Below, piece after piece: positions 1-47,962 of a DNA stretch of 64,000 nt; the first letter of the stretch is position 1; every line of letters starts with the position of its first letter. Location of the stretch: contig CATNEN010000041.1 of NCBI GenBank assembly GCA_950097015.1, positions 1,364,001 through 1,428,000 of the forward strand. Direction: 5' to 3'. Source of the stretch: Macrostomum hystrix. Lineage: Eukaryota; Animalia; Platyhelminthes. The position numbers were made by a program, and so were the translations under genes. The notes beneath the pieces were generated by a model. The model had not been told where the DNA came from. It saw nothing but the letters and a program-made list of their open reading frames with translations, and searched no databases.

Positions 1-2885
1 GGCGTCTGATGACTCGTCGGATCACTCGTCGCCTCCTCACGATGTGTCTGCGTGGCACGATGCGTCGGATGATGCGTCGGCGGCGGATGACTCGTCGGAG
101 TCCGATGACTCGTCGGATCACTCGTCGCCTCCTCACGATGCGTCTTCTTCGCACAATGCGTCGGATGATGCGTCGTCGGCGGATGACTCGTCGGAGTCCG
201 ATGACTCGTCGGATCACTCGTCGCCTCCTCACGATGCGTCTTCTTCGCACAATGCGTCGGATGATGCGTCGTCGGTGGATGACTCGTCGGCGTCTGATGA
301 CTCGTCGGATCACTCGTCGTCTCCTCACGATGCGTCTTCTTCGCACAATGCGTCGGATGATGCGTCGTCGGCGGATGACTCGTCGGCGTCCGATGACTCG
401 TCGGATCACTCGTCGCCTCCTCACGATGCGTCTGACAATCCTTCTTCGCACAATTTTCCTTCTGAGCACCTTGCTTGCCACTAGGCGTCCAGCGATCTTT
501 CTGATAAATCTTCTCGTTCTCGGAATGAGTTTACGGATTACTCTGCGTCTAACAATCTTTCGTCTGACAACGCGGCGGACAATCTTTCGCTTTCTAACGA
601 CCAGACGCTTGATTCGTCTAATCTGGCGTTTTCGTCTAAAGACGCAGACGGAGATGCGTCGTCGGAGGTATCGGCGCCTAATAGAGTTCTTCACTATTCT
701 GCGCTTCAGGGTCACGCGTCGTCTCCTGAGTTTAAAGATTCTCGATGTGCAAATGGAAATGCGCCTGACAAGGCGGCGAATGCGGAATGTGGTTCGCCTA
801 ACGCGTCGCCTCACCCGCCTTACAACACGCCTCACAACTCTGCGGCGGACGACTTTGCGGCGAACGATTTTGCGGCGAACGACCCTGCGCCTGATGACTT
901 TTCGCTGGATTCTTAGCCTCCTCACGCGTCTAATCAAGCGGGTGCGGCGAACGCGAACGGCTGTAATTCTGCGCAACAGAATGCGTCGCCTCACCCTAAG
1001 CTTCACAGCACGACGTTTCAGAACAATACGCCTCCTGAAAATTCTGCGGACTCGACGTCTAATAACAACATGCCTGCGAATAACCCGCCGAATCTTACGA
1101 TACACACGCCTGACTCGTCGGACGACTCGAGTTACCACACGGCGTACTACGCGACGTCGAACAACGCGTCTGATGATGCGTCGTCGGCGGATGACTCGTC
1201 GGACTCCGATGACTCGTCGGATCACTCTTCGCCTCCTCACGATGCGTCTGAGTGGCACGATGCGTCGGATGACTCGTCGGCGTCTGATGACTCGTCGGAT
1301 CACTCGTCGTCTCCTCACGATGCGTCTTCTTCGCACAATGCGTCGGATGATGCGTCGTCGGCGGATGACTCGTCGGAGTCCGATGACTCGTCGGATCACT
1401 CGTCGCCTCCTCACGATGCGTCTTCTTCGCACAATGCGTCGGATGATGCGTCGTCGGCGGATGACTCGTCGGCGTCTGATGACTCGTCGGATCACTCTTC
1501 GCCTTCTCACGATGCGTCTGCGTGGCACGATGCGTCGGATGACTCGTCGGCGTCTGATGACTCGTCGGATCACTCGTCGTCTCCTCACGATGCGTCTTCT
1601 TCGCACAATGCGTCGGATGATGCGTCGCCGGCGGATGACTCGTCGGCGTCTGATGACTCGTCGGATCACTCGTCGTCTCCTCACGATGCGTCTTCTTCGC
1701 ACAATGCGTCGGATGATGCGTCGTCGGCGGATGACTCGTCGGAGTCCGATGACTCGTCGGATCACTCGTCGCCTCCTCACGATGCGTCTTCTTCGCACAA
1801 TGCGTCGGATGATGCGTCGTCGGCGGATGACTCGTCGGAGTCCGATGACTCGTCGGATCACTCGTCGTCTCCTCACGATGCGTCTTCTTCGTACAATGCG
1901 TCGGATGATGCGTCGTCGGCGGATGACTCTTCGGCGTCTGATGACTCGTCGGATCACTCTTCGCCTTCTCACGATGCGTCTGCGTGGCACGATGCGTCGG
2001 ATGACTCGTCGGCGTCTGATGACTCGTCGGATCACTCGTCCTCTCCTCACGATGCGTCTTCTTCGCACAATGCGTCGGATGATGCGTCGTCGGCGGATGA
2101 CTCTTCGGCGTCTGATGACTCGTCGGATCACTCGTCGCCTCCTCACGATGTGTCTGCGTGGCACGATGCGTCGGATGACTCGTCGGCGTCTGATGACTCG
2201 TCGGACCACTCGTCGTCTCCTCACGATGCGTCTTCTTAGCACAAGGCGTCGGATGATGCGTCGTCGGCGGATGACTCGTCGGCGTCTGATGACTCGTCGG
2301 ATCACTCGTCGTCTTCTCATGATGCGTCTTCTTCGTACAATGCGTCGGATGATGCGTCGTCGGCGGATGACTCGTCGGAGTCCGATGACTCGTCGGATCA
2401 CTCGTCGCCTCCTCACGATGCGTCTTCTTCGCACAAGGCGTCGGATGATGCGTCGTCGGCGGAAGACTCGTCGGCGTCTGATGACTCGTCGGATCACTCG
2501 TCGCCTTCTCACGATACTTCTGCGTGGCACGATGCGTAGGATGACTCGTCGGCGTCTGATGACTCGTCGGATTACTCGTCGTCTCCTCACGATGCGTCTT
2601 CTTCGCACAAGGCGTCGGATGATGCGTCGCCGGCGGATGACTCTTCGGCGTCTGATGACTCGTCGGATCACTCGTCGCCTCCTCACGATGCGTCTTCTTC
2701 GCACAAGGCGTCGGATGATGCGTCGCCGGCGGATGACTCTTCGGCGTCTGATGACTCGTCGGATCACTCTTCGCCTTCTCACGATGCGTCTGCGTGGCAC
2801 GATGCGTCGGAAGACTCGTCGGCGTCTGATGACTCGTCGGATCACTCGTCGTCTCCTCACGACGCGTCTGCGTAGCACGATGCGT
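1..2885 (-). repeat. Coding tandem repeat, ~96-bp unit (32 aa, Arg/Ile/Val), interrupted by a unique Arg-rich block at ~430-1160
   Basis: Plus-strand unit is gatgactcgtcggagtccgatgactcgtcggatcactcgtcgcctcctcacgatgcgtcttcttcgcacaatgcgtcggatgatgcgtcgtcggcg. The codon-aligned plus frame contains TAG stops, whereas the minus frame stays open. Confidence 0.9.
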
Positions 2886-5556
2886 CGTAGGATACGTTGG
2901 ATTCTACGTTTGAATGTTCTTAGCTTTTTGTTTATTTTTTTTATAGTGCTACGTGAAGTTTTTCGGCGCCGCTTTGCGTTTTGAAGTAGTTTTCCGAGCC
3001 TTCTGCGTAGCGTTCTGCGATGTTTTTTTATTTCGAAGCGGGTAAAGCTTCTTTGCCTTGTGCGTAGCTGTTTTCTAGCATTCCTTCTGATTTTTCTGAG
3101 GAGTGTTTGAATTCTCTTTTTTAATACGTGACGTTTTGCAACTCCTCGGCAACATTTGTTTAGCTGTAGTTGTCTAACTTTTTGTCTGATTTTTCTGTTT
3201 ATTTGAAGTCTTATTCTTTTTCTTAATGAACGCCACTTTCTGTTAATTGTTCTCTTTAGTTTTCGCTCATATCGTTTTAATATCTTCTTTGTTTTTGTCC
3301 GAACAGCTCTGGACTTCAGGCGCCGAAGTCCATGTTGTAGCCTTTGGCACTTGCAGATCATATTGCCGCGAATGGTTACTTTGCTGCTTCTGCTATATCT
3401 AATGCGCCGTGTGATTGGCTTACGCGCTATCTTTGCTGCCTCTTTTGAGATGAGACCTTTTCGAAAGAAGGCTTTCTTGATGAGCCTGAGCCGATGTTTC
3501 GTCACTGGCTTCTTTTTGAGTTTTCGCATCACTCTTCGCTGATATCGTTTGTTTAACTTTGTCAGCCTTTTACCGAAGGCGCTCTGGACCTTGAAGATTC
3601 TCTTCTTGAAGCGCAAGACGCGCCGCTGAATCCTGGCCTTGTACCGCAGTCGCATCTGCTTGAGAAAATTTTGATAGAGTCGCTTCTTCTCGCGCAGCTT
3701 CTCATGGTAGAGCTTCAGCCTCATCAGAAGTAGCTTGGTCTCATACTTGGCCTTGTAGATTCGTTTGGCTGCCTCCATGATTTTGCGCTTATTGATTTCG
3801 CATTGCTGCGGAGACAGCTTCGTAGCTGAAAGTATTTTTACATGTACTTATTGGTCTCCGTGATTACGATTGGATATCGGTAGCTAAGTAAGATAGACTC
3901 CGATTGTGACGGCAATGCTTTTGAATAACTCTTACATGACAATGGTGAATGGAATGATATTGACAACTGAGATGAGCAAATGATATTTTTTCACTCTTCA
4001 TTGATTTTTGTAATTGCTGTCAGTGAACGAGAATGATGGCGATAATGATAGTTCATAGTGACAATTCAGCCTTGATGTGAGGACGAGGAGAGACCATGAC
4101 TCCCACGAAGGCTATGAAAAAAGAACATCTGAAAATTCAAAATGAGCACAGGTGTGGCCCGGATTATAAAAATTTGCTAATCGCAGATTGGGTTTACGTC
4201 GATAGAAACAGACAGCAGCAGCAGACTGATATATCCCAGTTAATTGCGCCCAATAGAGAAGTAAGCAAATATAGATACCTATACTCTGGATATCGGGATG
4301 CATAAATCTGGGAGAAAGTACAACAATAAGGAGCAAATTTTTAGTTTTTCTCGTGTCTTCTGTTTGCAGCTACGTAAAACGTAGCCACAGAATCACTGCA
4401 CCCCTATCACTGGCGCCCCAGGGACCTTTGAGGTAGTTCATGAACTCCAGGTTATCCGTCCGTCTTTCTTTATCGACGTATTCAGGATTTTGGGAAATTT
4501 AAAATGAAAACCTTCCTACGAAAGAACTGCCTCAGAAATGACATCTCTGGTTTACCGACCTTTTCAAGCCGTGAATTTATGAGCACATGCAGAATTCTTC
4601 CAGAAATTACACACGGCAACACGAAAATTGGTCATGAATGCGATCGGTAAGGAAAAATCAAGAAAAAAGAATTTCAAGATGGAGGTTGCGGTAAATTAGT
4701 TGGCAAAAAGTTGGCCAATGAGCGGAATGACTCACGCGCCCTGTAGCCGCTGTTGTAGACCCGGTTGCGCCATGCCCCGCCGCAGGTCAGGCCTGATTGG
4801 CCGCTGCACTTGGAGCTGCACTGCGAGTCCGGCGCCTTGCCGTAGCGGCCGTAGCTGTTGCCGCACCAGCACTCGCGCCCGGCCTGAGTGCCGGCATAGC
4901 GTAAACGCAGGCCGCGGCACAGTGCGGCGCAGGACTGCGGCGTGATGGAGCCAGAGCGCGCCAGCTTGGGCAGGTCGCGCGGCTTGAACTGGTCCTTATA
5001 GCAGCCGAGACTGGGCGGCGCGGCCGGGACTGCGGGTTTGACGGCGGCTTGATGTCAGATAACATTATTCACAGATTGATAACAGAGAGATTGATAGAAC
5101 CTGATCATCAGATCCTGATCAGACTTTCTTAGACCTGGTAAGCACTTTGGGTGACATTCTGAGGCCTGGTAAGCTCTTTGGGTGACATTCTGAGGCCTGG
5201 TAAGCTCTTTGGGTGACATTCATGAGCCTGATAAGCTCTTTGGGTGACATTCTGAGGCCTGGTAAGCACCTTGGGTGACATTCTGAGGCCTGGTAAGCTC
5301 TTGAGGTGAGATTCATGGGCCTGATAAGCTCTTGGGGTGAGATTCATGGGCCTGATAAACTCTCAACTTTTGATTCTTAGTGGCTGTTTTATAAAACTCT
5401 GGGTCGGTCTAGAATATTAGAATAGACTAGATTTCAGTAGGCAGGCTGAGGTCTTGAATGCGGCTTACCCGGTCCTCGGCGGCCCTGGATGCTGGCTCCC
5501 GTGGCGGACATTGCTGTCCAGCCGGCGAGAGCGACCAGCAGCAGCCAGATCCTCAT
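1..5556 (-). CDS. Secreted signal peptide-WSC domain-giant Arg/Ile/Val-rich repeat protein (gene A; 3' end lies beyond the window)
   Basis: Exons 5556-5469, 5047-4736 and 3825-<1, all joined in phase 1. Exon 1 is MRIWLLLVALAGWTAMSATGASIQGRRGP with donor GTAAGC. Exon 2 is a WSC domain (LGCYKD...CAALC...YAGTQAGRECWCGNSYGRYG...CSSKCSG...CGG.W.N.VY) with an AAG acceptor and GTGAGT donor. Exon 3 has acceptor TTTCAG and begins K/R-rich (TKLSPQQCEINKRKIMEAAKRIY...), followed by RRRRIIRRIVRRRRIVRRRRVIRRVI repeats. I found no stop in the unique segments or in the repeat blocks I read. At least ~1,400 codons. Confidence 0.85.
4736..5047 (-). CDS. WSC carbohydrate-binding domain exon of gene A
   Basis: 8-Cys WSC pattern GCY.D...C...C...Y.G.Q.G.ECWCG...C...C.G...CGG. 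The 312-nt exon is phase 1-1. Confidence 0.9.
5116..5355. repeat. Intronic minisatellite (~32-bp unit ctgaggcctggtaagctctttgggtgacatt) in gene A intron 1
   Basis: About 7 imperfect tandem copies are visible. Confidence 0.85.
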
Positions 5557-6152: not shown

Positions 6153-6754
6153 GGTGGCCGTGGCGTCCGAATCGATGCTCGGCGTCACCCACCCAACTCC
6201 GCGCAGTCCGGCCCGAAAAATAGTTGTAGTTGGCGAATGAAAAAACTGCAAGTTAGTAAACTGGACACCCTCCACGATTTGCAGCTTGCTTCTGCTGCTG
6301 CTGCCGAGGGTAGGGAGGGGCTGTTTTTCAGAACATGCAGCGCTCCTGAATAACCCAGCCATCGAATTCAGCTGACGAAAGCTACTTCTGTTGCCAGAGA
6401 GGGGAGTAGTTTGGCTATGACAATTAATGCAGCCAGAAATCAATACGTTTTGAATACTCATTAAAAAACAAAGCGATCCTCAATAGGCCATGCCATACTG
6501 GCCATCCATTTGCAGATAAAGTGCGCGGAGTTATCGCACTGCTTCCGTCTCACTTTGAGCTGAGGATGAGCTGAGAGACCGAGATAATTCAAATCAGGTG
6601 ATGCCGCCTACTTGTGAGACAAGCCACGAAACTACGCGCGTCGCTAGCTAAAAGCTTTCCAAGAAACTGAAGCCATTTAACTTCATGACCATCCTGAGAA
6701 CTCATAAGATCATGATTTTTTTACCACAAACAAAAAATGATATGCGCGATAATG

Positions 6755-7270
6755 CTGACACCTGTATCACCAACTGCTGCTGACACACCTGTATCACCAA
6801 CTGCTGCTGACACACCTGTATCACCAACTGCTGCTGACACACCTGTATCACGTATCACCAACTTCTGCTGACACACCTGTATCACCAACTGCTGCTGACA
6901 CACCTGTATCACCAACTGCTGCTGACACACCTGTATCACCAACTGCTGCTGACACACCTGTGTCACCAACTGCTGCTGACACACCTGTATCACCAACTGC
7001 TGCTGACACACCTGTATCACCAACTGCTGCTGACACACCTGTATCACCAACTGCTGCTGACACACCTGTGTCACCAACTGCTGCTGACACACCTGTATCA
7101 CCAACTGCTGCTGACACACCTGTATCACCAACTGCTGCTGACACACCTGTATCACCAACTTCTGCTGACACACCTGTATCACCAACTGCTGCTGACACAC
7201 CTGTATCACCCAGCTCCTGTATCACCCAGCTCCTGTATCACCCAGCTCCTGTATCACCCAACTGCTGCTG
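6755..7270. repeat. 27-bp minisatellite (gacacacctgtatcaccaactgctgct), ~17 copies, intergenic
   Basis: Tandem copies explain the spurious QQQLVIQVC and DTGVSAAVG ORFs. Confidence 0.95.
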
Positions 7271-7763
7271 TTGCAATAGCTAGGTTCAACAGCAGGTATT
7301 TTCTGAACTGTGAAAGAAAAAAGACACAGACGAAGTACATTTTAAGGAAAATCTAATCTTAGAAGTACACTAAAGCCTACGTTTATTATCAGAATGAGCA
7401 GGCGGAGGTGCTTAAGCACTGACTAGCAAGCTAATGCGAGCCAACAACGGAAAGTAAAAAAAGAACATAAAATCGAATGCTATTAACAAAATTGATAAGA
7501 AAACAATTTTCTACTAATAAATAACTGCCTTTAATAAAATTAAAAGTACCAAGATGCAAAAATATGAAGGAAAGTATAGCAACGATGATTCTGAATAAGA
7601 CTAAATAATAAAATAAAATAAAACCGAACAGAAAGTTGGACAGAAATCTATCATATATTAAACAACAGCAAAGAGAATAAGCATTCTGTGAAGCTGTTCA
7701 GAATCTTCGGCATCAATACAGTCTTTAGTTAGAACTCTTTTCAGCTCTTGATGTCCAGTCATT

Positions 7764-10700
7764 TCAATAGGCGGCCGCGCTGCTCTGAAGCTGGCGCAGC
7801 TTCTCGATGAGCTGGGCCAGGGTGAGCATGGCCCGACCCAGGTGGAATAAAATGTCATTGAGCCAAGGTACAACGGCCTGGCCGTGGTACCGGCCGCTGA
7901 TGTCGTAGGACTTGGTGCGGGTGTTGTAGTGAAGAAAGTACACGGCCAGCACCAGACGGCGCCCGCTGACGTACATCGACAGGCTCATGTCGTTGGGCAC
8001 AGGCGGGTGGAACACCTCCTGGAGGACGGATCAATCGGGAATGACGTGGCAACGGTCATTCGGTCTGGCTTGCTAGTGACTTTATGCGGATATCATGAGC
8101 CAGCATTGAACAGATATCCATGAACACCTGTTAGACTGCCACCCAGAACACCTGTTAGACAGCCACCCAGAACACCTGTTAGACAGCGATCCAGAACACC
8201 TGTTAGACAGCCACCCAGAACACCTGTTAGACAGCCACCCAGAACACCTGTTAGACAGCCACCCAGAACACCTGTTAGATAGCGATCCAGAACACCTGTT
8301 AGATAGCCACCCAGAACACCTGTTAGATAGCCACCCAGAACACCTGTTAGACAGCCACCCAGAACACCTGTTAGATAGCGATCCAGAACACCTGTTAGAC
8401 AGCCACCCAGAACACCTGTTAGATAGCGATCCAGAACACCTGTTAGACAGCCACCCAGAACACCTGCTAGACAGCCACCCAGAACACCTGTTAGATAGCC
8501 ACCCAGAACACCTGTTAGATAGAGATCCAGAACACCTGTTAGACAGCCACCCAGAACACCTGTTAGATAGCCACCCAGAACACCTGCTAGACAGCCACCC
8601 AGAACACCTGCTAGACAGCCACCCAGAACACCTGTTTTACACCTTGTGTCGACTGTGCGCGAGTTCTTCAACCGATCGCTTCTGTGGCTGCACAACATGG
8701 TCCCTGGCCGACTTCAGGCAGGCGAAGATCCGATCCAGAGTCTGCAGTGCGGCGAGAGAGCGGGATGCTGGATCTGCACAAGCTCAGTGTGGACTGAAGG
8801 GCATCCGGGATGCTGGATCTGCACAAGCTCAGTGTGGACTGAAGGGCATCCGGGATGCTGGATCTGCACAAGCTTAGTGTGGACTGAAGGGCATCCGGGA
8901 TGCTGGATCTGCACAAGCTCAGTGTGGACTGAAGGGCATCCGGGATGCTGGATCTGCACAAGCTTAGTGTGGACTGAAGGGCATCCGGGATGCTGGATCT
9001 GCACAAGCTCAGTGTGGACTGAAGGGCATCCGGGATGCTGGATCTGCACAAGCTCAGTGTGGACTGAAGGGCATCCGGGATGCTGGATCTGCACAAGCTT
9101 AGTGTGGACTGAAGGGCATCCGGGATGCTGGATCTGCACAAGCTTAGTGTGGACTGAAGGGCATCCGGGATGCTGGATCTGCACAAGCTTAGTGTGGACT
9201 GAAGGCATCCGGGATGCTGGATCTGCACAAGCTTAGTGTGGACTGAAGGGCATCCGGGATGCTGGATCTGCACAAGCTTAGTGTGGACTGAAGGGCATCC
9301 GGGATGCTGGATCTGCACAAGCTTAGTGTGGACTGAAGGGCATCCGGGATGCTGGATCTGCACAAGCTTAGTGTGGACTGAAGGGCATCCGGGATGCTGG
9401 ATCTGCACAAGCTCAGTGTGGACTGAAGGGCATCCGGGATGCTGGATCTGCACAAGCTTAGTGTGGACTGAAGGGCATCCGGGATGCTGGATCTGCACAA
9501 GCTTAGTGTGGACTGAAGGGCATCCGGGATGCTGGATCTGCACAAGCTTAGTGTGGACTGAAGGGCATCCGGGATGCTGGATCTGCACAAGCTTAGTGTG
9601 GACTGAAGGGCATCCGGGATGCTGGATCTGCACAAGCTTAGTGTGGACTGAAGGGCATCCGGGATACTGGATCTGCACAAGCTCAGTGTGGACTGAAGGG
9701 CATCCGGGATGCTGGATCTGCACAAGCTTAGTGTGGACTGAAGGGCATCCGGGATGCTGGATCTGCACAAGCTTAGTGTGGACTGAAGGGCATCCGGGAT
9801 GCTGGATCTGCACAAGCTTAGTGTGGACTGAAGGGCATCCGGGATGCTGGATCTGCACAAGCTTAGTGTGGACTGAAGGGCATCCGGGATGCTGGATCTG
9901 CACAAGCTTAGTGTGGACTGAAGGGCATCCGGGATGCTGGATCTGCACAAGCTTAGTGTGGACTGAAGGGGGGTCGCGGATTCTCACCTCGAGCGTCCTG
10001 GTTGACTGCGAGTGGCAGCCGATCTCGCAGGCCTGTTGGATGCTGAACTTGGCTGCCTGTAGCGTGCTGCCGCAGCTGATCAGCTGTTTTCATTTGCGGG
10101 TTCTTTGTAGATAAACGTTTCGAAACAATTTTGCCTGAGTTCAAGGCCGAGTGCAAGAAGTCCGAACTGCTATAGTCTATCTAAATAGTCAGCTAATTTC
10201 ATTTTCATGCAATTTTTTCACTCAAACCATTCAATAGAACTTCTGTGCCTTTCAAATCGAGCCGCCATGAGCTCCTGGCAGAACTGGCACATTCCGGATT
10301 CAAAAACATGTCCAGCTATAAAATTTTTGTTTACAGGGCAACTAAGATCCCATAGAAATGGTTGTGTAAGCAAGTCACAAAAATGGCCAAACACAGAATA
10401 ACAACTCGCGCGCATTACGGGGCTGGCCATTGTGTGAGGGGCAAAGCTTGCTTCGCTTTTTAATTTCAGCTGCTCCTTTGCAATGCACTGGCAGTTGGGT
10501 TGGGGCAGTGGCTAAGAGATCACGCCATTTTGGGAGAAGTCACAGCATTGCTGCGTGAACTGAACGCGGGGAACTTTAAAAAAACTGCATTTTTCTTATG
10601 GTAACCACAACAGTCTATAAGAGTTCGAAATCTGACCTGGGATTCGAATGTTGTTGAGGATCTGGGATTCGAATGTTGTTGAGGATCTGGGACTTGACTG

Positions 10701-11344: not shown

Positions 11345-12999
11345 AGCTGCTGAGAAATGTTAAATTGACAATAAAGTTATGACTTAAATGTTTATTAAAG
11401 ATGTTTTGATCTGTTTAAAGATATCCTTTTGCTAAAAACAGCATTTTGTTACAGAGTTGAAATAAAAAAAGCAAGCACAAAGCATTTTTTAATTAATTAT
11501 TACAAAGGTAAAGAGTAATTCAGAACTAGTAGTTTAATATAATTGTATTTAAACTAAATATGCATGGTTGTTTCAGAGTAGATCGCTTAAAACTAAGGTA
11601 TATATCATATCTCAATTATTAATGGAAATGTTTGTATACTGTAAAAAATATTAACAAGTATATATTATATTTATATATACAAGTAGTAGCAAAGTTCTTC
11701 TAATACAATGCAATGTTTCATTTAATAGGATTTATGCTAACCAACTTATAGCTATAACAAAAATTAATCAGCTGCATCATTCCTTCTAAATCAATAACTA
11801 TGTCATAAAATGTTCAACCATAATTTTATTTGCATCATCACTTTGATTGCAACTACAAAAGAATAAAGAATAATTTTATTTTAAACTAAATTCATTAGAT
11901 ACAGTGGAATAAAAATCTTGAATTTCATACCCAGTTTAAGTATTGTAAAATAAAATAAAAACTTTGTGTGTCACATGGTTAGCCTGAATATTCTAAATCT
12001 AGTAATGATGAAATGATAATAAGAAATTACTACTTATATTATATTTTATTCCCTGTTAGAAAGTTTTGTTTACATTAACTATAGCTACTTAGTCTTACGC
12101 CTAAGAATATTCAATTTCTATATTTGGTAACCCTCCAAATTCCACACTTATGTCTAAATACCTCTTAGAGACTAAAAAGGCTAAGCTTGATTCATTGTTA
12201 AAATTTCTTAAAGCGCCACAACGTGTCTATTCCATAGGTATATGCAGTGTCTAAATAAATAAACGAACTGCTTAATTGCACTAAATCATTTATTGCTACA
12301 CTATAAGTCTATATAGATTTTTCATCCAGTCGCGGGGACATGACCAAGACCAAGAGTACACGAAGTAAATATACATGTTTCTGGGAAAAAATTATTGATT
12401 AAAAAAGGACCAGAACTACGCATGCGATAAATCAAATGAACTTTAATATATCTTAAAGTATACTATAAATTCAACAAGGCCGCTATAATAAGTATAAATT
12501 TCTATAGGCTTCTATCAGGGTATTATATATATTCTCATATAGCTTCTAAGTAAAAAGGCCAGTATTTTAACTTTGCTCTATTCTGCAAATTACAGGTCCC
12601 GTCAAGCTGGCCCTCAGTCGATAAATTTGCTATGTAGGGCTGGCTAGGTCGTCTTGTCATCTTATATGAACCACCGAAAATTATCTGTCATAAACAAACT
12701 GTTCCTGCGCATAGCCATGCAGTATAAGTATACAGCGTTGAGTGTTTCCAGAAGTGTGAAAACCGAGCGGGTATTTAAAAGTTAGGCAGTTAGCTAACAG
12801 TAACACTTGTCTAACTTATATATAATTCATTTCATTTAGTCAATTCATTTCCGACGGGTTAGCAAGTAACAAGTAACATTTTTTGTTATGCAATTAGCTT
12901 ATTACACTAAGTTAATAGCTAGTTCTATAGATAGCTTGCAAGTTGGATATTTTTCGTCACTTCATATCCTCCAGTTACTTGAGAATTTACTGCTTCGTA

Positions 13000-15900
13000 A
13001 TGAAACCTACTAAATTAAATTTATTCCTTCATAATTTTTTTGCACTATGTGTTGTTGGCAGCTTAGGATCTTTTTTCAATCGAGTCTCTTTTGGATCTAT
13101 GGCTGAGCCAATGGTAAGTAACTATTCAACAAAATTTGCAGTTTGAGGTTCACTTTATTAGCCAAGTATCACAGTTCCAATAGTAATACAATTGTAATAA
13201 GCAGATGCAGTTAAAATTATTTAGCTTTTTTATGATTTGACAGTATAAATGTTAGACACATTTGTAATTCAATTCTTGCTTTTAAACAGACATCAACTGA
13301 AGGTGATTAGCTAATACAGCTGTATTCAGCCTTGCATTAAGAGATAATTGACATTAATTCACAGGCAGGCGAGTTTGTTGGAGTCCTGCACATTCATTTG
13401 GACTCTTACCGTCAGGCTGATAATGGCTGGTGTGACCAGAGCATATTTTGGTCTGACAAGTGCGATCCATACTTTATTGTGACTGCCGGGCCTGCTGGGC
13501 GGCCGCCACTTGCCCGCTTTGAATCTCGGCCAGTTGACAATGCGCAGCAGACTGTGCAATTTGGCAAACGGATTGGACAGCTGACCAATCCCCTGCGCTT
13601 CTTGTTTAAAGACTCCGACAGGCTGGATGACTCGCTCGTCATTGAGGTTGGGGCAACGAAAGTACTATGCAGATTGCGATTCCCACCAGACTGTGTGCCC
13701 AGTTCATTAGAATCCTATCTCACATTATTCCCAATATAATGAAATCCCAACTGACCTAATTCCCAATCTAATGAACTCCCATCTGAACTAATTATCAAGA
13801 TAAATGATATCCGATCTGACCAAATTCCTAATCAAATAAATCCCAACTGACCAAGTTCCCGATATAATGAAATCCCAACTGATCGAGTTACCACTCTAAT
13901 GAAGTCCCAACAAATCTATTAGCCAAGCAGACTTGAAATATTATAGTTTTGGCGTTCTCGACCCCAAACGCTGCCAGATCACGGTGAAGGACCATGACGA
14001 GATTTCTCTGGACGATCAGATGTCTCACTTCCTGTGGCAGCTGCCTCTGGCCAACCTCACCACTGGCATCCTGCTCGAATCCGCCGCTCAAAGCGCCGCC
14101 CCGGAGCCCAGCTCTGCCAGTCTGATTAGCCGGGGGGGAAGCGGAGACCAGCTGACGCTGCAGGCCTGGATCGCTTGCCGGCCCGGCCGGGCTGGGCCCG
14201 CCTGCCGAGTCGCCTGCTCGCCCGCCCGATTTCGTGGCGTAGGTGGCGGCTTCGCCTGCGAGCTAGCTACCGGTCGGCGGGTCTGCCTGCCCGGCTTCGT
14301 TAGCGTGGGCTGCGCGCGCCAAGATCCGTGCGCGGCCGCCGATGTCAGCAGCGGCAGCGTTGGTTCATCGCCTTTCTGCGCCCACGGCGGCGAGTGCGTG
14401 CCGCCGGCAGCCGGTGACGCCAGCCTCGCCACCTGCCGCTGTCGGAAGGGCTTCGGCGGGCCCCGCTGCGAGTCCGTGCTGCGGCCGTGCGGCGGTGGTC
14501 TCGGAAACTCGCCGGCCTGCGCGCACGGCGTGTGCGTCACCTCTGCAGTGGGCGCCAGATGCGACTGCGATGTCGGCTATCAGGTGTGTGCGACTTCCAC
14601 TGTCAATCACTCTCTTATCGACAATGAATCACTCTCTATCCATAGCGAATCACTCTCTATCCACAGTGAATCACTCTCTATCCACAATGAATCACTCTCT
14701 ATCCACAGTGAATCACTCTCTATCCACAGCGAATCACTCTCTATCCACAATGAATCACTCTCTATCCATAGCGAATCACTCTCTATCCACAGTGAATCAC
14801 TCTCTATTCACAGCGAATCACTCTCTATCCACAATGAATCACTCTCTATCCACAGCGAATCACTCTATTCACAATGAATCACTCTCTATCCACAGCGAAT
14901 CACTCTCTATCCACAATGAATCACTCTCTATCCACAGTGAATCACTCTCTATCCACAATGAATCACTCTCTATCCACAATGAAATCACTCTCTATCCACA
15001 ATGAATCACTCTCTATCCACAATGAATCACTCTCTATCCACAATTAATCACTCTCTATCCATAATGAATCACTCTCTATCCATAATGAATCACTCTCTAT
15101 CCACAATGAAATCACTCTCTATCCACAATGAATCACTCTCTATCCACAATTAATCACTCTCTATCCATAATGAATCACTCTCTATCCATAATGAATCACT
15201 CTCTATCCATAATGAATCACTCTCTATCCACAATTAATCACTCTCTATCCATAATGAATCACTCTCTATCCACAATGAATCACTCTCTATCCACAATGAA
15301 TCACTCTTCACCCGTTGGAAATCGCTCTTTTTCCGTTGAAGATTGCTCTTTATCCATTGGAGATCGCTCTTTATCACCACCTGCCCAGGGCGAGCTCTGC
15401 AGCGAAGACATTGACGAATGCCGCCTGGTGTCGCCTTGCCAGCACGACTCCGTCTGCGTGAACACTAGGGGCGGCTTCGTGTGCCGCTGTCGGCCCGGCT
15501 TCTCAGGCCGGCTCTGCCAGTTGCCTCCGATGCTGCTGCCGCCTCCGGAGCCCCAGCCCGTTGCCGCCTCGGCTGCAGAGAGTTCCGTAAGCGACTTGGC
15601 CAGTTAAGTTTGCAGAAATGACTTATCAGCAGGGTGCCCCGGCCCGAGCGGATGCAGCGAGGAGGCGGCGGGAGCGGCCCATTTCGCTAGCCCATGGGTT
15701 TGCAGAAATGATTGCGAGCAACTCAATTTAACGATTTCACGAGTTCCCTTCATAATTTCAATTCAAATCTTATTCGTAGATTTCACGTTACACCAAGTGA
15801 AACTAGCTGGTTATATTCTACAAAGCTAAAATCACAAATACAGGTCACTTGCATACGCACAAAGGCATGCCAACACAAGCGAACAGGAAATTTGAATTTA

Positions 15901-16585
15901 ACAGCGACAGATGTGCAAGCTGATAAAGATTTTCTATAGTTCAGCTACACCGACGGATACGTAAAATGCACAGCTTGGACACCAGCTTCATATCTTTAAA
16001 ATTAAAAAATCTATACGCTCGTCATATCTTAATCTGCCCTCCGTAAAAAAAATTTTTGTATCACACTAGCCACCATCGGTCATTCAAAGGTCAGTTATGC
16101 TAGAGAATACAGTTTCAGACTATTCTACTCACAGGACGCAAGGTAAGTAGCACGCCTTCTAATTGTTGCAGACAGTGGGCTCAGCCACGCTGCTGACAGC
16201 CGTTCTGCTGTCGGTGATTGCGGTGCTGGCGCTGGCCCTGCTGCTCCTTCTGCTGCTCCTCTGGCGCAAGCGAGGTTCTGGCCGCAGCCCGCAGTTCGTC
16301 GCTATTTTCAATCGCCGTCCAGACAAAACATCCGACACGTCGGAACCTGAGGACAGCCAGTGCTACTATGAGTCCATCGAGGATCCGCTGCAAGCCAACG
16401 AGAGTCCCTTCTACGCCGATGGGGAAAATTTTCCCAATGCCGCCTACTCCGTTGGGGCATCGACCGCCGACTTGCTGCCGCCGTCTCCGCCGCCACCGCC
16501 GCCGCGACTAACTCCATCTGGCGCATCCCACTGCGGCATGCCTGCAGGTGCTGACTCGGACTCGCAGTCCAACTGCTACGTCTGA
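13000..16585 (+). CDS. Delta-like type I membrane protein: signal peptide, C2/MNNL-like domain, degenerate DSL, 3 EGF repeats, TM helix, Tyr/Pro-rich tail (~537 aa)
   Basis: Exons 13000-13113, 13365-13646, 13978-14583, 15389-15586 and 16172-16585, all phase 0 with canonical GT-AG. DSL-like segment: CRPGRAGPACRVACSP...ACELATGRRVCLPGFVSVGC. Ca-binding EGF: EDIDECRLVSPCQHDSVCVNTRGGFVCRCRPGFSGRLC. TM: LLTAVLLSVIAVLALALLLLLLLLWRKR. Exon 1 is the least certain. Confidence 0.8.
14605..15305. repeat. 21-bp intronic minisatellite (aatcactctctatccacagtg/aatg), ~33 copies
   Basis: Lies in intron 3 of the Delta-like gene. Explains the SLSIHSE tail of ORF 13933-14877. Confidence 0.95.
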
Positions 16586-17277
16586 CATTGCCTGTCAAAT
16601 GCTACTTACTTAAATGATTGGTTTGCAGCTTCTGCTTTTGTGTCACTAAAAGAAAAGCCTCTGCTTTCCTGTAGTTTTCTCATGAGTTTTACTTACGTCT
16701 GCATGATTAGAGACATTGGTAATATGCACTTGTACAGTTTTTATATCAAAGCTCATAGGATACTCCGATTGATAATGCATGCTTGAAATACAGTCTGCCT
16801 CAAATATAGCAGCTACCTGCACTAACATTAACATAAATAAATAAATAGAAAGTATTTCGCTATTGAAAATCCTGTAATTATTCAAATAAATTGCCAAATT
16901 GAAGTCCGAAACAGGTCGGCTACTTTTAGCTAAAAACATGCCGCAAATTTAGATTTATTTAAATAAGCCGGCTATTGAAACAGATGGCATTGAACTGAAC
17001 AAATTGACTTCTATCTGCACTGGTTCGAAGTTGGTTTCTAAGTAAAATGCAATGCACTGCGCGCCAGCCTTGCTTACCACAATTTGCAGGTCGCACATAG
17101 ATACAAAGTCTAAACAGCTACTCGAGTGCAGCTGTCTTCAGCTGAGAAAGGACTCGACAGTTGCAGTCCACAATGAATTCTTTATAATAATTACAAAGTA
17201 TAAAAATACTTCGAACCAAAAATATAATTTATCTAACTATAGGGACCCTACAGATAGCAATAATTGCTGAAAACTAG

Positions 17278-17700
17278 GGCCTGTGATCTGGGGCTGCAAT
17301 CTTATTAGCTCAAGATGACCGCCTGTGATCTGGGGCTGCAATCTTATTAGCTCAAGATGACCGCATGTCATCTGGGGCTGCAATCTTATTAGCTCAAGAT
17401 GACCGCATGTCATCTGGGGCTGCAATCTTATTAGCTCAAGATGACCGCCTGTGATCTGGGGCTGCAATCTAATTAGCTCAAGATGACCGCCTGTGATCTG
17501 GGGCTGCAATCTTATTAGCTCAAGGTGACCGCCTGTGATCTGGGGCTGCAATCTTATTAGCTCAAGATGACCGCCTGTGATCTGGGGCTGCAATCTTATT
17601 AGCTCAAGATGACCGCCTGTGATCTGGGGCTGCAATCTAATTAGCTCAAGGTGACCGCCTGTGATCTGGGGCTGCAATCTTATTAGCTCAAGGTGACCGG
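17278..17700. repeat. 39-bp minisatellite (cctgtgatctggggctgcaatcttattagctcaagatgaccg-type), ~11 copies
   Basis: Tandem array just downstream of the helicase stop codon, between two convergent genes. Confidence 0.93.
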
Positions 17701-17770
17701 GCAAATTTGTGCGACTCAGAAAAGCACAAAAAGAATTCAAAAAGTTCTTTCTGTTCGATCAGCAGGCGTG

Positions 17771-20700
17771 TCAGAAGCGTGTCCGGCGGACATGTCCGTG
17801 ATGCTGCTGCTGCCGGTGCGGCCTGGGCGGGCCGGAGCTGCGCCAGACGGCCTGCTTGAAGTTCGGAAGGGCGCCAGACCTGCTGCTGCTTCTCGACGAC
17901 TCTGAGTCGTCGTCTTCAGCGTCCCCGAACTCGTCGCTCCTGGCGATGGCCGGCGATCTGGTGAGAAATTCGGGCACCTCCTGGTTGCAGGCGCGCAAAA
18001 CCTGCTGAAGGTCCCGACGAATGTCCTTGGAGGCCAGATCCCTGTTCGTCAGGAAGGTCACGGCGCGGCCGGGTCGGCCTAGACGGCCAGTGCGGCCCAC
18101 CCGGTGAATGTACTGGTCAATGTACTGCGGAGCGTCAAAATTCACCACCAGGCTGACGCCAGGCAGGTCTAGGCCACGCGCGGCGACGTCGGTGGCCACC
18201 AGGACGCGGCTCCGACCGCTTTTGAAGCTCTCCAAGGACATCTGGCGGGTCTGGAATGGGGGGAAACTTATCTAGTTCGAACTTTAATTTAACACTGCGA
18301 ATCATGATCGTCCCTGTGGTCTGAAGCTCTCCGAGTCTAAGACAGCGGCGATCATGTTCACCAGCAAAAACAAATGGCATATTCGCCCCCTCCAGCTGTA
18401 TGGAAAGGACATCACCTTCCAGAAGCAAACTAAATGCTTGGGCATAACGCTCGATCACAGGCTCAGCTGGACTCCTCATGTCCACGCTAAAGCCAAAAAG
18501 GCCTTTGCGATCCTGGCGCAGCTGCGCAGGGCGGTAGGCAACACTTGGGGTCTCACCCCCAAACGCCTTTGGTGGATCTACACTGCTATGGTCAGACCGG
18601 CTGTTTCGTACGCCGGACTGATCTGGGCTAGCGCCCTGCAGCTAAAGACCTGCCATGAGACTCTTTGGAGAGTGCAAGGTCGCGCATGTCGCATGATCAT
18701 GAGCGCCCCGTTATCCGCCCCCTTCGATGGCCTCAGCGCCTTCCTGAACATCTTCCCGCTTGATATCTTTATCCGCGGTGAGGCGGCAAAAACCGCCCGG
18801 CGTCTCCTTGATGCCGGTGTGCGCTTCGTCCCCCAACGAGCGGCAGCGAAACGAAAGCTCCTGCCGCACACGGACCTTTGCCTGAGAGATTTGGGCGCGA
18901 GCAATGGAATCAATGTCCTCACGGACGGTGAACCGTGCACGCTCAACCTCTTTCAGCGCTTCAAAGTTCTCATCCCCACCAGGGACCAAGCTAGCGACCA
19001 CTGGAACACTCAGGAGGTCCACTGCTACACGGACGGATCCATGAAGGATGGCTCCGCTGGCTTCGGGGTCTGTATCCTAATCAACGGACGTGTTGTCGCC
19101 ACACACGCCCAACACACTGGAAACTCCTCGAGCGTTTTCCAGAACGAGGTCCTGGCCATCAGCTCCTGCGCTGCGGAGTTGAATGAGAAAAACATCTCAG
19201 GCAGGACTATCATCTTTCACTCGGACAGTCAGGCTACTCTGCAAGCCCTCTGTCACACCACCACAACCTCCCGGACAGTCTCCGACTGTGTCCGGCAGCT
19301 CAATAACCTGGCCGGTAAGAATACCGTCAGACTTCAGTGGATACCAGGGCATGCCGGTTTCCCTGGAAACGAGCTTGCTGACTACCTGGCCAAGCAGGGA
19401 GGCGCCAGCTCTGCGCCGGGCCCCTCCCCCCGGCTCCGATTCCGAACACCGTCATCTATCGTCAGATCAATGACTGGACCGCCAACCTCCATCTTACCCG
19501 GTGGAGAAGCACCACTAACTGCCGCCAATCCAAAGCGGCAGTTTCAGTGCCATCCACTCGGCGCCGGAAGGTCCTTCTAAACCAGATCCGGGCCCTCACC
19601 ATGACCCTCACGGGCCATGGCTGCTACGCCAGACACTTTCCTCCGTGGAGACCTCCGGAGTGAGCTGTGCCCGTTCTGCAACCTTGAGACGAGGATGCCC
19701 TGCACTTCGTCTGTCACTGCCCTTTCTTCACCAGAGAGAGGCTTAATTACCTCGGACCAAACCCATCCATGGACGATGTTTGCAGATCCGAGAACATCCC
19801 GCGGCTCGTCCGGTTCCTAAGGGCTACCAGACGAGCCTCTTTCTTCCCCAGCGAGGAACAAGCTGCAGGAAGGACCGAACACGGACCTCCCTGACTGGCC
19901 CCGCGCGATCGGCCGACTGCGGGTCTTTCAGGGATTAGCGGAATGGGCGACTCCCGCCTCCCCGTTGTGTCCATCGGACCGCCCTGCAGATAAGTCAAGT
20001 AAGTCAAGTCATGATCGTCCCAAGCTAAAATTAGCTCGTATTTTTCGAATTATTGCGACCTGTAAAATCGCTGATAAATTGCTTATCTGAAAAGCCAAAG
20101 ATCTGCCAGGGGAGACCCAGCTGCTCACCATCTGCCGCATGTCGCCGTGGAGGGCGACGGCGGCAACTCCGCCGGTCTCCAGCCGCCTGAGCAGCTGGCT
20201 GGCGCCCAACTTGGTCTGCACGAACACCAGGCAGCGCTCGTCATCACCCAACTCGGCTAGCAGGCGGCGCAGCGAGTCGAGCCGTGTGGCTTCGCCGGCG
20301 CCATCCAGGAGCAGCAGCTGCTGGCGGATGCCGGCCGGCACCGGGCCGGACTCGGCGCCGTGGCCGGCCAGGACTGAGATGCGCGCGTCCGGGCGGAGCA
20401 GATTGCGCACAATGCGAGCCACGTCTGGCGGGAATGTGGCTGAGAACAGCGAGGTCTGGCGGCCGGATGCGGGCGGCGGGCCAAACTCCTGGCTGGTGAT
20501 GATTCGGCGAATGTCTCGCTCGAAGCCCATGTCTAAGCAGCGGTCGGCCTCATCCAGTATGAGCTGGCGGCAGGCGCTCAGCGACAGGATGCCGCGCTGC
20601 AGAAAGTCCAACAGGCGGCCGGGTGTCGCAACGGCGATGTGGGCGCCCTCGTTCAGGATCTGCGGGGTCGGAGGCGGAGCTCAGACAGCTGGACTGGTCT

Positions 20701-37902: not shown

Positions 37903-40730
37903 GATGGGACAGCAGCCTCCGATGGGAGATGGGACAGCAGCCTCCGATGGGAGATGGGACAGCAGCCTCCGATGGGAGATGGGACAGCAGCCTCAGATGG
38001 GAGATGGGACAGCAGCCTCCGATTGGAGATGGGACAGCAGCCTCCGATTGGAGATGGGACAGCAGCCTCAGATGGGAGATGGGACAGCAGCCTCAGATGG
38101 GAGATGGGACAGCAGCCTCCGATGGGAGATGGGACAGCAGCCTCAGATGGGAGATGGGACAGCAGCCTCCGATTGGAGATGGGACAGCAGCCTCCGATGG
38201 GAGATGGGACAGCAGCCTCAGATGGGAGATGGGACAGCAGCCTCAGATGGGAGATGGGACAGCAGCCTCAGATGGGAGATGGGACAGCAGCCTCCGATGG
38301 GAGATGGGACAGCAGCCTCAGATGGGAGATGGGACAGCAGCCTCAGATGGGAGATGGGACAGCAGCCTCAGATGGGAGATGGGACAGCAGCCTCCGATTG
38401 GAGATGGGACAGCAGCCTCAGATGGGAGATGGGACAGCAGCCTCAGATGGGAGATGGGACAGCAGCCTCAGATGGGAGATGGGACAGCAGCCTCAGATGG
38501 GAGATGGGACAGCAGCCTCCGATTGGAGATGGGACAGCAGCCTCAGATGGGAGATGGGACAGCAGCCTCAGATGGGAGATGGGACAGCAGCCTCAGATGG
38601 GAGATGGGACAGCAGCCTCAGATGGGAGATGGGACAGCAGCCTCAGATGGGAGATGGGACAGCAGCCTCAGATGGGAGATGGGACAGCAGCCTCCGATGG
38701 GAGATGGGACAGCAGCCTCAGATGGGAGATGGGACAGCAGCCTCAGATGGGAGATGGGACAGCAGCCTCAGATGGGAGATGGAACAGCAGCCTCAGATGG
38801 GGATGGGACAGCAGCCTCAGATGGGAGATGGGACAGCAGCCTCAGATGGGAGATGGGACAGCAGCCTCCGATGGGAGATGGGACAGCAGCCTCCGATGGG
38901 AGATGGGACAGCAGCCTCAGATAGGATATGGGACAGCAGCCTCAGATGGGAGATGGGACAGCAGCCTCAGATGGGAGATGGGACAGCAGCCTCAGATGGG
39001 AGATGGGACAGCAGCCTCAGATGGGAGATGGGACAGCAGCCTCAGATGGGAGATGGGACAGCAGCCTCAGATGGGAGATGGGACAGCAGCCTCAGATGGG
39101 AATGGGACAGCAGCCTCAGATGGGAGATGGGACAGCAGCCTCAGATGGGAGATGGGACAGCAGCCTCAGATGGGAGATGGGACAGCAGCCTCAGATGGGA
39201 GATGGGACAGCAGCCTCCGATGGGAGATGGGACAGCAGCCTCAGATGGGGATGGGACAGCAGCCTCAGATGGCAGATGGGACAGCAGCCTCAGATGGGAG
39301 ATGGAACAGCAGCCTAAATTGGCAGATGGGACAGCAGCCTCAGATTGGAGATGGGACAGCAGCCTCAGATGGGAGATGGGACAGCAGCCTCAGATGGGAG
39401 ATGGGACAGCAGCCTCCGATGGGAGATGGGACAGCAGCCTCAGATGGGGATGGGACAGCAGCCTCAATTGGCAGATGGAACAGCAGCCTCAGATGGGAGA
39501 TGGGACAGCAGCCTCAAATGGGAGATGGGACAGCAGCCTCAGATGGGAGATGGGACAGCAGCCTCCGATGGGAGATGGGACAGCAGCCTCAGATAGGATA
39601 TGGGACAGCAGCCTCAGATGGGAGATGGGACAGCAGCCTCAGATGGGAGATGGGACAGCAGCCTCAGATGGGAGATGGGACAGCAGCCTCAGATGGGAGA
39701 TGGGACAGCAGCCTCCGATGGGAGATGGGACAGCAGCCTCCGATGGGAGATGGGACAGCAGCCTCAGATTGGAGATGGGACAGCAGCCTCAGATGGGAGA
39801 TGGGACAGCAGCCTCAGATGGGAGATGGGACAGCAGCCTCCGATGGGAGATGGGACAGCAGCCTCAGATGGGGATGGGACAGCAGCCTCAATTGGCAGAT
39901 GGAACAGCAGCCTCAGATGGGAGATGGGACAGCAGCCTCAGATGGGAGATGGGACAGCAGCCTCAAATGGGAGATGGGACAGCAGCCTCAGATGGGAGAT
40001 GGGACAGCAGCCTCCGATGGGAGATGGGACAGCAGCCTCAGATTGGAGATGGGACAGCAGCCTCAGATGGGAGATGGGACAGCAGCCTCAGATGGGAGAT
40101 GGGACAGCAGCCTCCGATGGGAGATGGGACAGCAGCCTCAGATGGGAGATGGGACAGCAGCCTCCGATGGGAGATGGGACAGCAGCCTCAGATGGGGATG
40201 GGACAGCAGCCTCAATTGGCAGATGGAACAGCAGCCTCAGATGGGAGATGGGACAGCAGCCTCAAATGGGAGATGGGACAGCAGCCTCAGATGGGAGATG
40301 GGACAGCAGCCTCCGATGGGAGATGGGACAGCAGCCTCCGATGGGAGATGGGACAGCAGCCTCAGATTGGAGATGGGACAGCAGCCTCAGATGGGAGATG
40401 GGACAGCAGCCTCCGATGGGAGATGGGACAGCAGCCTCCGATGGGAGATGGGACAGCAGCCTCAGATGGGAGATGGGACAGCAGCCTCCGATGGGAGATG
40501 GGACAGCAGCCTCAGATGGGAGATGGGACAGCAGCCTCAGATGGGAGATGGGACAGCAGCCTCCGATGGGAGATGGGACAGCAGCCTCAGATTGGAGATG
40601 GGACAGCAGCCTCAGATGGGAGATGGGACAGCAGCCTCAGATGGGAGATGGGACAGCAGCCTCAGATGGGAGATGGGACAGCAGCCTCAAATGGGAGATG
40701 GGACAGCAGCCTCAGATGGGAGATGGGAGA
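37903..40730. repeat. 25-bp minisatellite (gatgggagatgggacagcagcctca), ~110 copies
   Basis: 2.8-kb array. All long GQQPQMGDGTAASDGRWDSSLRWEM ORFs are frame-rotation artefacts of the 25-bp period. Confidence 0.97.
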
Positions 40731-41331
40731 GCAAAATCAGTTGGGAGAATTCCGAGCTTCATGGCTACACGGAGCATCCCAATTTGTAGCGCATCTTGAT
40801 GGACTGCAGGAATTCCCGTTGCAGGTGTAGCTGTGCATAATGTTTAGCAGGCTCAGCATGTTCCTCAGGAAGTGTTTTGGTATACAGGATTCTTCAGGAA
40901 TATTCCCGGCTCCAACTACTTGAGCTGGGTCACTGCGCGGAAGACACGGAAACTAAACAAAAATGCGAGGTACAAGACCAGGTCAGAAGATGGACAAACT
41001 CGTCGATCGGCTGTTTAGCAGTTCATTTTTTGGAAAACGCTGAGCCAGCTCAGCGATTAGGACATGAGGCATGAAAATTTTATGCTGTCCATATTTGTCA
41101 AATTTTATGCCAATAATTCAACAAGCGGATGGGGAAGCATCCTGCTCAGGGATTTGCATTTCCCGGTCTGCTTTGGAATCCCATGGGACCGGCTGGGGAT
41201 CGAGGAGACTGAAGAAATCGAGGGAGGGTATTTTGTTGGAGAGTCATTTTGCTAAATTTATTCCCCGTTTTCCGCTGCTCTCCAGCTCCGTGACAAGTCG
41301 CAGACGCCGATGCAAGGCGCAGTGATGATCG

Positions 41332-47300: not shown

Positions 47301-47962
47301 GTGTCTACTCTCCCGCGTGTCTACTCTCCCGCGTGTCTACTCTCCCGCGTGTCTACTCTCCCGCGTGTCTACTCTCCCGCGTGTCTACTCTCCCGCGTGT
47401 CTACTCTCCCGCGTGTCTACTCTCCCGCGTGTCTACTCTCCCGCGTGTCTACTCTCCCGCGTGTCTACTCTCCCGCGTGTCTACTCTCCCGCGTGTCTAC
47501 TCTCCCCTGTCTACTCTCCCACATCTCTATTCTACTATGTCTACTCATGGCTACATAGTAAGTAGCCCATTATGTGTCTATTCTCCCCTGTCTATTCGAC
47601 TCTACTTTCCCATGTCTACTCTTCTCTTCCATGTCTACTTTACCCTCTCATGTCTACTTACCCTCCCGTGTCTACCCTACTCTCCCATGTCCACTCTACC
47701 CTCAAGTATATACTCTACTCTCGCGTGTCTACTCCACCCTCCGGAGTCTACTCTACCGACCCCAGTCTAATCTACTCTCTCGTGTCTGTCTGCTATCTAA
47801 TGTCTTCTCTGCTCGAATCTACTCTCCATCGTCTACTATTTTCTTCGGTATATAATCTACTGCAGTCAATCGAGTGTCTCGCTAAATTTCAGGGTCAACA
47901 AGCCGTCAATGCAGTTGAGGGATTTCCACCAGGCCTTCAACTGCAGCTCGGCTGATATCTGA
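41332..47962 (+). CDS. M13 family (neprilysin/ECE-like) zinc metallopeptidase, type II membrane, divergent
   Basis: Exons 41332-41727, 41933-42685, 42764-42901, 43292-43387, 43457-43563, 43692-43893, 43994-44083, 44483-44631, 44728-45037 (or -44968), 45503-45553, 46435-46515, 46605-46672 and 47893-47962, with consistent phases. TM segment VVMFCAILFLGGITVGLTIGLV. Motifs: DPCVD.HRHAC..W, VNAFY, QPPFF, GSVFGHEFFH, ESLADQFGL, QFFLAYA and RVN...DFHQAFNC. Confidence 0.85.
43010..43285. repeat. 13-bp intronic repeat (cctgatccctaat/cctgatccctcat)
   Basis: About 20 imperfect copies in an M13 intron. Confidence 0.9.
44325..44410. repeat. ~19-bp intronic repeat (atgtacattcatagcag core), 4 copies
   Basis: Visible tandem copies. 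Confidence 0.8.
45585..46050. repeat. Adjacent intronic arrays: 20-bp gaccaccgacatgtgtctat (~10x), then 14-bp ctactctctcaggt (~18x)
   Basis: Both lie in the intron after the ESLAD exon. Confidence 0.92.
46740..47830. repeat. 16-bp intronic minisatellite (gtgtctactctcccgc), ~35 perfect copies with degenerate flanks
   Basis: Lies in the last M13 intron. Source of the spurious RVYSPACLLSRVSTLP ORFs. Confidence 0.95.

Follow-up and report, generated by a model that had tools for sequence, protein, structure and literature searches.

A Macrostomum hystrix minus-strand gene predicted to encode a secreted, half-arginine WSC protein of about one megadalton

One end of a 64,000-nucleotide (nt) stretch of the flatworm Macrostomum hystrix genome (GenBank assembly GCA_950097015.1, contig CATNEN010000041.1, here C41, positions 1,364,001 to 1,428,000 of the forward strand; hereafter the window) consists largely of tandem repeat with long open frames on both strands, which raises the question of which strand, if either, encodes a protein. 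Sequence comparison confirmed that the locus is a real protein-coding gene, here gene A, on the minus strand at C41 ~1,341,839-1,369,556. It has 15 exons, encoding a signal peptide, one WSC domain, and one 23.8-kb exon followed by 12 phase-1 micro-exons. The summed exon lengths give a coding sequence of 25,032 nt, exactly 8,344 codons, and the predicted product has ~8,344 residues, a mass of ~1.09 MDa, and a net charge of about +4,330. The parts of the gene are as follows, in window positions (negative positions lie to the left of the window; a slash marks an exon end).

5469..5556, minus strand: exon 1, 88 nt, signal peptide; start codon at 5556-5554; ends in phase 1 at donor G/GTAAGC, with GT at 5468-5467
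5048..5468, minus strand: intron 1, with GT and AG ends; a 31-bp minisatellite lies inside at 5122-5363 (7.8 copies in the tandem repeat table)
4736..5047, minus strand: exon 2, 312 nt, encoding a WSC domain that contains eight cysteines; both ends in phase 1, AG acceptor, donor GTGAGT
3826..4735, minus strand: intron 2, 910 nt, ~42% GC; donor GTGAGT, AG acceptor behind a pyrimidine tract
2966..3825, minus strand: first part of giant exon 3, a non-repetitive Lys/Arg-rich, predicted helical module with five conserved cysteines
1169..2965, minus strand: first array of Arg/Ile/Val units, 32 residues (96 nt) each apart from some 26-residue variants
421..1168, minus strand: spacer block of ~240 residues, copy one of ten, rich in Arg, Val, Ile, Lys, and Leu and less regular than the arrays
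1..420, minus strand: second array of 32-residue units, extending past the window edge
-22161 to -20099 (C41:1341839-1343901), minus strand: tail of 12 phase-1 micro-exons rich in Thr, Ser, and Gly, the 3' end of gene A

The original prediction, made from the letters of the window and a list of its open reading frames (ORFs), had the minus frame open from 3825 to the window edge and supposed that the list had missed it because it runs off the window. Both points held: no stop interrupts the frame between 3847 and window position 2 (1,282 codons), and on the contig to the left it stays open for 7,953 codons in total, until a TAG 20,012 bases left of the window (position -20012). Giant exon 3 runs from 3825 to -19997 (C41:1344003), 23,823 nt without an in-frame stop, and closes at a strong phase-1 donor, G/GTGAGA, 14 bases upstream of that TAG. 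At the other end, the in-phase splicing that had been proposed at 5469/5047 and 4736/3825 uses canonical GT-AG introns, and phase 1 at all junctions of the first three exons allows the signal peptide, WSC domain, and giant exon to be read through in frame. Domain and homology searches were run on individual gene A exons. Exon 2 matched WSC (Pfam PF01822) with an expectation value (E) of 1.5e-18 and a score of 67.2 bits, where the curated cut-off is 27.8; the match extends over positions 2-82 of the 82 in the profile. WSC was the only match in a Pfam scan of gene A pieces, which found nothing significant in the signal-peptide exon, the N- and C-terminal modules of the giant exon, the first 333 repeat codons, or the last tail exon.

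A long frame through a tandem array may arise in another way, namely as a non-coding minisatellite left open by an accident of composition, or as the shadow of a plus-strand product rich in Ser/Asp or in Thr/Met/Arg. Minisatellites open in several frames abound in the M. hystrix genome (for example, at window 8093-9987 and on contig C24), one plus frame at the locus is open over 4,567 codons, and the repeat copies are near-identical, all of which speak for such a reading. Because near-identical copies amount to one event copied many times, the length of the gene A frame is not independent evidence of coding, and the case for coding therefore rests on comparison with an ortholog and a paralog. 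The stop counts nevertheless separate the frames. Over the 23,823-nt exon, the coding minus frame has 0 stops and the other five frames have 14, 33, 152, 513, and 859; the minus frame also stays open through non-repetitive sequence at either end of the exon, ~290 codons at one and ~230 at the other. The plus-strand 991-residue and Ser/Asp-rich ORFs of the list, which the original prediction had called antisense shadows, do lie antisense to gene A, in the frames with 14 and 33 stops across the full exon. The Ser/Asp-rich frame was also considered as an acidic, biomineralisation-type protein and was ruled out because it contains 33 stops and overlaps a conserved, spliced gene in antisense.

A profile of the basic N-terminal module, searched against 1.84 billion representative proteins, matched only two clusters, both from Macrostomum lignano (E 1.7e-42 and 4e-37).

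Macrostomum lignano matches: UniRef A0A1I8GNH5, A0A1I8HKC0, and A0A1I8F1Q9; GenBank PAA63193.1 and PAA48566.1; gene Mlig029036

The M. lignano proteins join signal peptide, WSC domain, and basic module at the same places as gene A, including the join made across intron 2, and they are read in the minus frame of the M. hystrix locus. The GenBank annotation of M. lignano was built from RNA-seq and transcript assemblies (PMC5730564), and because this transcript-derived annotation has the same exon joins, the ortholog is transcribed and spliced in the manner modelled for gene A. Exon 1 is 66-70% identical to the signal peptides of three M. lignano proteins, and all eight cysteines of exon 2 align to the same columns as in the ortholog. 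The basic module is 74% identical between the species, with nonsynonymous and synonymous divergences (dN and dS) of 0.157 and 1.28 and a dN/dS of ~0.12; the WSC exon is 60% identical, with dN 0.34, dS 0.56, and a dN/dS of ~0.6. Between the two species, the WSC exon (4736-5047) thus evolves much faster than the basic module (2966-3825). Beyond the basic module, the M. lignano locus runs on into a different repeat, with a unit of ~82 residues that is 40% Arg, 15% Lys, and 31% Ile plus Val. This region (NIVC01001863.1, reversed, 12771-18475) shifts frame at intervals of 80-360 codons and is cut short by the end of the contig; GenBank nevertheless calls a 565-residue product there. Database entries for the family in M. 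lignano comprise only fragments of 213-364 residues, labelled hypothetical or WSC domain-containing. The polymer body has gone unnoticed in databases because assemblies break at such repeats and, in proteomics, sequences of this kind are destroyed by trypsin.

Within the M. hystrix genome, the basic module matched only gene A itself and one paralog on another contig, C29.

C29:6089195-6100650: paralog with signal peptide, basic exon of 1,647 codons, C-terminal module, two WSC exons, and tail modules

The N-terminal modules of gene A and the paralog are 50% identical over 278 codons, with the five cysteines conserved, proportions of nonsynonymous and synonymous differences of 0.325 and 0.84 (pN and pS), and mismatches of 105/91/174 at first, second, and third codon positions. 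The C-terminal modules are 35% identical (E 3.7e-23) with mismatches of 79/63/113. Purifying selection on the basic module is therefore supported by substitution patterns against both ortholog and paralog. The third-position excess and low dN/dS in the minus frame, its in-phase splicing to the WSC and signal-peptide exons, and the transcript-based M. lignano proteins, together with the stops in the plus frames, largely refute the non-coding and plus-strand readings, to which we give a very small residual probability. The idea of a signal-peptide WSC protein with a natural Arg/Ile/Val polymer for a body gained support from the ortholog joins and from this selection; its secretion is predicted from sequence.

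Long ORFs are indeed mimicked elsewhere in the window. At 6721-7283, 8093-10114, 37904-40830, 46799-47770, and 51884-53152, two or three frames at a time are open through minisatellites whose periods are 24-45 bp or longer, and these are ordinary non-coding arrays.

The paralog also bears on the plan of the family. Its equivalent leader exon is spliced straight to the basic exon, and it differs from gene A in its length of ~1,800 residues, in having no N-terminal WSC domain, and in carrying its pair of WSC exons after the C-terminal module. The position of the WSC domain, as judged from the predicted exon orders and from the phase-1 junctions read in gene A, is thus variable between paralogs. 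By analogy with gene B, a neighbouring gene at 26.8-36 kb of the window, a second WSC exon had been predicted for gene A. A tblastn search with the WSC exon found none in the 40 kb downstream, where the 3' end is instead formed by the micro-exon tail. All 12 tail exons have AG/GT ends and are without stops, and the internal ones are all multiples of three in length; the tail terminates at a TAA (stop codon ending at C41:1341839), with an AATAAA ~95 nt beyond. One module of ~23 residues is present three times, and the composition is near-neutral, with 21% Thr, 17% Ser, and 14% Gly. Micro-exons downstream of the C29 WSC exons carry the same tail module, so the family plan includes the tail, which supports joining it to gene A. 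Common to gene A and its paralog are accordingly the basic N-terminal module, the conserved C-terminal module, and the Thr/Ser-rich micro-exon modules. The body of the paralog is mostly non-repetitive (31% Arg, 12% Lys, 27% Val plus Ile plus Leu), a Pfam scan of it gave nothing significant, and its frame is broken by a stop or very short intron at C29:6094583. Because an Arg/aliphatic composition is kept across the gene A exon, the C29 body, and the M. lignano repeat despite their different sequences, selection appears to act on the protein.

The giant exon encodes 7,940 residues (1,053 kDa), of which 51.3% are Arg, 17.3% Ile, 16.5% Val, and 3.4% Lys, with 16 Asp plus Glu in all. It opens with ~290 non-repetitive Lys/Arg-rich residues, continues through ten super-repeats, and ends with ~230 non-repetitive residues that form the conserved C-terminal module. 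Each super-repeat spans 560-964 residues and consists of one ~240-residue spacer block and 10-23 units of 32 residues; the ten spacer copies are near-identical, with 8 variable sites in 765 nt. The earlier description of a 32-residue unit that is 56-63% Arg was accurate, as the commonest unit has 20 Arg in 32 residues and the Gly-Leu variant 18. Four different Arg codons serve the 20 arginines of the 96-nt consensus unit, and the periods of all tandem repeats in the table are multiples of three. The arginines fall into short runs, with 246 of length one, 669 of two, 137 of three, 520 of four, and none longer, and 519 of the 520 four-Arg runs are directly followed by Ile or Val. Ribosomes stall on long polybasic tracts, and the limit of four arginines per run may reflect this. 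The repeat is restricted to the gene A locus in the M. hystrix genome and is not a dispersed repeat. The lone other match, at C24:3070538-3072507 on the minus strand with 29% identity, was rejected as spurious, this being an ordinary minisatellite with three frames open on one strand.

What such a chain might do depends in part on whether it forms an amphipathic helix. The original prediction had compared it with the designed LBU/WLBU peptides, which likewise combine Arg with beta-branched aliphatics and which short stretches of the spacer block resemble. That comparison stood for composition and failed for structure. LBU/WLBU peptides are idealised amphipathic helices, whereas the main repeat has a hydrophobic moment at 100 degrees of 0.39, equal to that of shuffled sequence (0.38 +/- 0.035), and a dominant period of 65-70 degrees, or 5.33 residues; an LBU-type amphipathic helix was therefore rejected for it, there being no 100-degree periodicity. 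An AlphaFold single-sequence model of four repeat units had a mean confidence (predicted local distance difference test, pLDDT) of 47.5, a value that fits a disordered polyelectrolyte or simply carries no information. The N-terminal module was modelled with long helices at residues 5-103, 172-225, and 228-285 (mean pLDDT 75.6, predicted template modelling score 0.35) and had a helical hydrophobic moment of 0.42 against 0.29 +/- 0.03 for shuffles. For the spacer block, the excess was marginal (0.45 against 0.36 +/- 0.039; local maximum, 1.12).

These results bear on a role in defence, in which microbes in mucus would be killed or immobilised either by the whole polycation or by short cationic peptides released from a polyprotein precursor at the four-Arg sites. 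The composition is like that of designed Arg/Val antimicrobials, the spacer block has its modest helical excess, the product contains about 630 R-x-K/R-R motifs at which a precursor might be cut, and the fast evolution of the WSC exon is of a kind common in immune and secreted genes. Set against this are the main unit, with a moment no higher than that of shuffles and a 5.33-residue period, and the low confidence of the four-unit model. A precursor is further opposed by the Ile or Val that follows the four-Arg runs, since aliphatic residues at P1' are poor for furin-type enzymes and may hinder cleavage, and by the helical module, WSC domain, and mucin-like tail, which would have no obvious purpose in a peptide precursor. 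On balance, we regard defence as an unlikely role.

The nearest known system is Mlig-ap1, a cohesive adhesion protein of M. lignano with Lys/Arg regions of more than 3,600 residues and an isoelectric point above 14 (Wunderer et al. 2019, PMC6410801). The proposed partners of its basic regions are negatively charged sugars, and attachment is blocked by heparin (PMC6410801). Like gene A, for which secretion is predicted, it is a giant from the same genus, made mostly of very basic low-complexity repeat together with a carbohydrate-binding domain. In Mlig-ap1, the repeats are rich in Gly, Arg, and Lys and lie on both sides of a core made up of C-type lectin, vWD/C8/TIL, and EGF domains, whereas gene A combines 51% Arg and Ile/Val with a single WSC domain, N- and C-terminal modules of its own, and a Thr/Ser/Gly micro-exon tail. 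Pfam found no ap1-type domains in the non-repeat pieces of gene A scanned or in the first 333 repeat codons, and because these defining domains are absent from the scanned pieces we do not count gene A as a member of the ap1 family. Mlig-ap1 is an earlier example of a giant polycation secreted by a flatworm; gene A is remarkable for its size and chemistry.

A second comparison lies in the window itself. Gene B lies on the opposite strand at a distance of 21 kb and has the same combination of signal peptide, WSC, and giant polycationic single exon as gene A. The WSC domain of gene A is 50% identical to the C-terminal WSC of gene B (E 1e-24), while the basic bodies and N-terminal modules of the two are unrelated (E 8.8). 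Protamines and other sperm nuclear basic proteins resemble gene A in being 50-60% Arg; they are small and nuclear and have no signal peptide, in contrast to a predicted product of 8,344 residues with a conserved hydrophobic leader and a disulfide-rich WSC domain. Word-indexed protein searches, one with the C-terminal module and one with 599 repeat residues, gave no matches, results made weak by the length window of the search. In the literature on flatworm WSC proteins, on rhabdites and arginine, and on the M. lignano gene name, we found no paper describing the gene A protein.

The role that we favour, at somewhat better than even chances, is that gene A codes for a secreted gland-granule polycation that binds anionic glycans, with the WSC domain as an anchor and a mucin-like tail. 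The protein would enter the secretory pathway and be stored in gland-cell granules with an anionic counter-polymer. Once released, it would act as an extracellular polycation that condenses with anionic glycans, sulfated ones among them, and anionic surfaces, or sticks to them, much as is supposed for the Lys/Arg regions of Mlig-ap1. The WSC domain would serve as a putative glycan-binding anchor at one end, and the tail, which is probably O-glycosylated and mucin-like, would with it provide attachment points. More speculatively, the splitting of short Arg runs by aliphatic pairs may let the ribosome and translocon handle such charge.

Several points weigh against this role. Transcript support for gene A comes from M. 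lignano rather than from M. hystrix, and the number of repeat copies depends on how a long-read assembly resolved near-identical units. In M. lignano, an older assembly shows the frame of the repeat region broken, which could reflect assembly error (indels) or decay. Proprotein convertases could cut the R-x-K/R-R motifs, such that the intact polymer may never leave the cell. Finally, double knock-down of ap1 and ap2 already removes the adhesive vesicles of M. lignano (PMC8621496); because those two proteins account for the vesicles, the gene A protein is unlikely to be a major component of adhesive-organ glue.

A gland other than the adhesive organ could also be the source, and gene A might be a reproductive secretion of the prostate, seminal fluid, shell gland, or cement gland that gels the ejaculate, glues eggs, or acts on partner tissue. 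M. lignano has a small, prostate-specific protein, RNA815_80.4, that carries two WSC domains (PMC4490696), and the fast-evolving WSC exon of gene A would suit such a role. RNA815_80.4 was considered as an ortholog and rejected, being a small, unrelated transcript of 969 nt, and, as a weak point, the M. lignano gene name is absent from the supplements of a study listing germline and stem-cell genes. We consider a reproductive role improbable, a shade more so than defence; it concerns the site of action and is compatible with a polycation-matrix mechanism.

The glycan-binding polycation can be drawn more sharply, in a form that we put forward only tentatively, at clearly less than even chances. 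The product would be a megadalton block polyelectrolyte, intact outside the cell and of a previously unreported kind, in which an Ile/Val pair strictly closes each run of four arginines and whose two ends are a lectin-type domain and a mucin-like tail. Such an Arg/aliphatic grammar would solve both the production of polyarginine in the secretory pathway and the formation of a water-resistant coacervate or gel with sulfated glycans, and the protein would be one of a set of giant, chemically distinct Macrostomum gland polycations.

Two further observations concern other parts of the genome and of the window. WSC domains are expanded in the M. hystrix genome, with 436 candidates, of which all 150 that were scored lay above the cut-off; loci include C7:5.912-5.936 Mb, C1:8.450-8.503 Mb, and C39:10.683-10.704 and 12.920-12.937 Mb, those on C7 being tandem arrays with a period of ~1.72 kb. 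On the plus strand of the window, at 18354-19580, a 408-codon ORF looks by eye like the tail of a retroelement reverse transcriptase with RNase H and is a candidate for such an element.

If translated as modelled, gene A would yield a natural secreted protein with a mass of ~1.09 MDa and arginine at half of its residues, a pairing of size and arginine content not known to us from any other protein. It may be relevant to bio-inspired wet adhesives and coacervates, and it would offer a natural test case for the translation and translocation of extreme polybasic sequences. Together with Mlig-ap1 and gene B, it suggests that Macrostomum secretions use chemically different giant polycations, which bears on the biology of flatworm glues, mucus, and reproductive gels.

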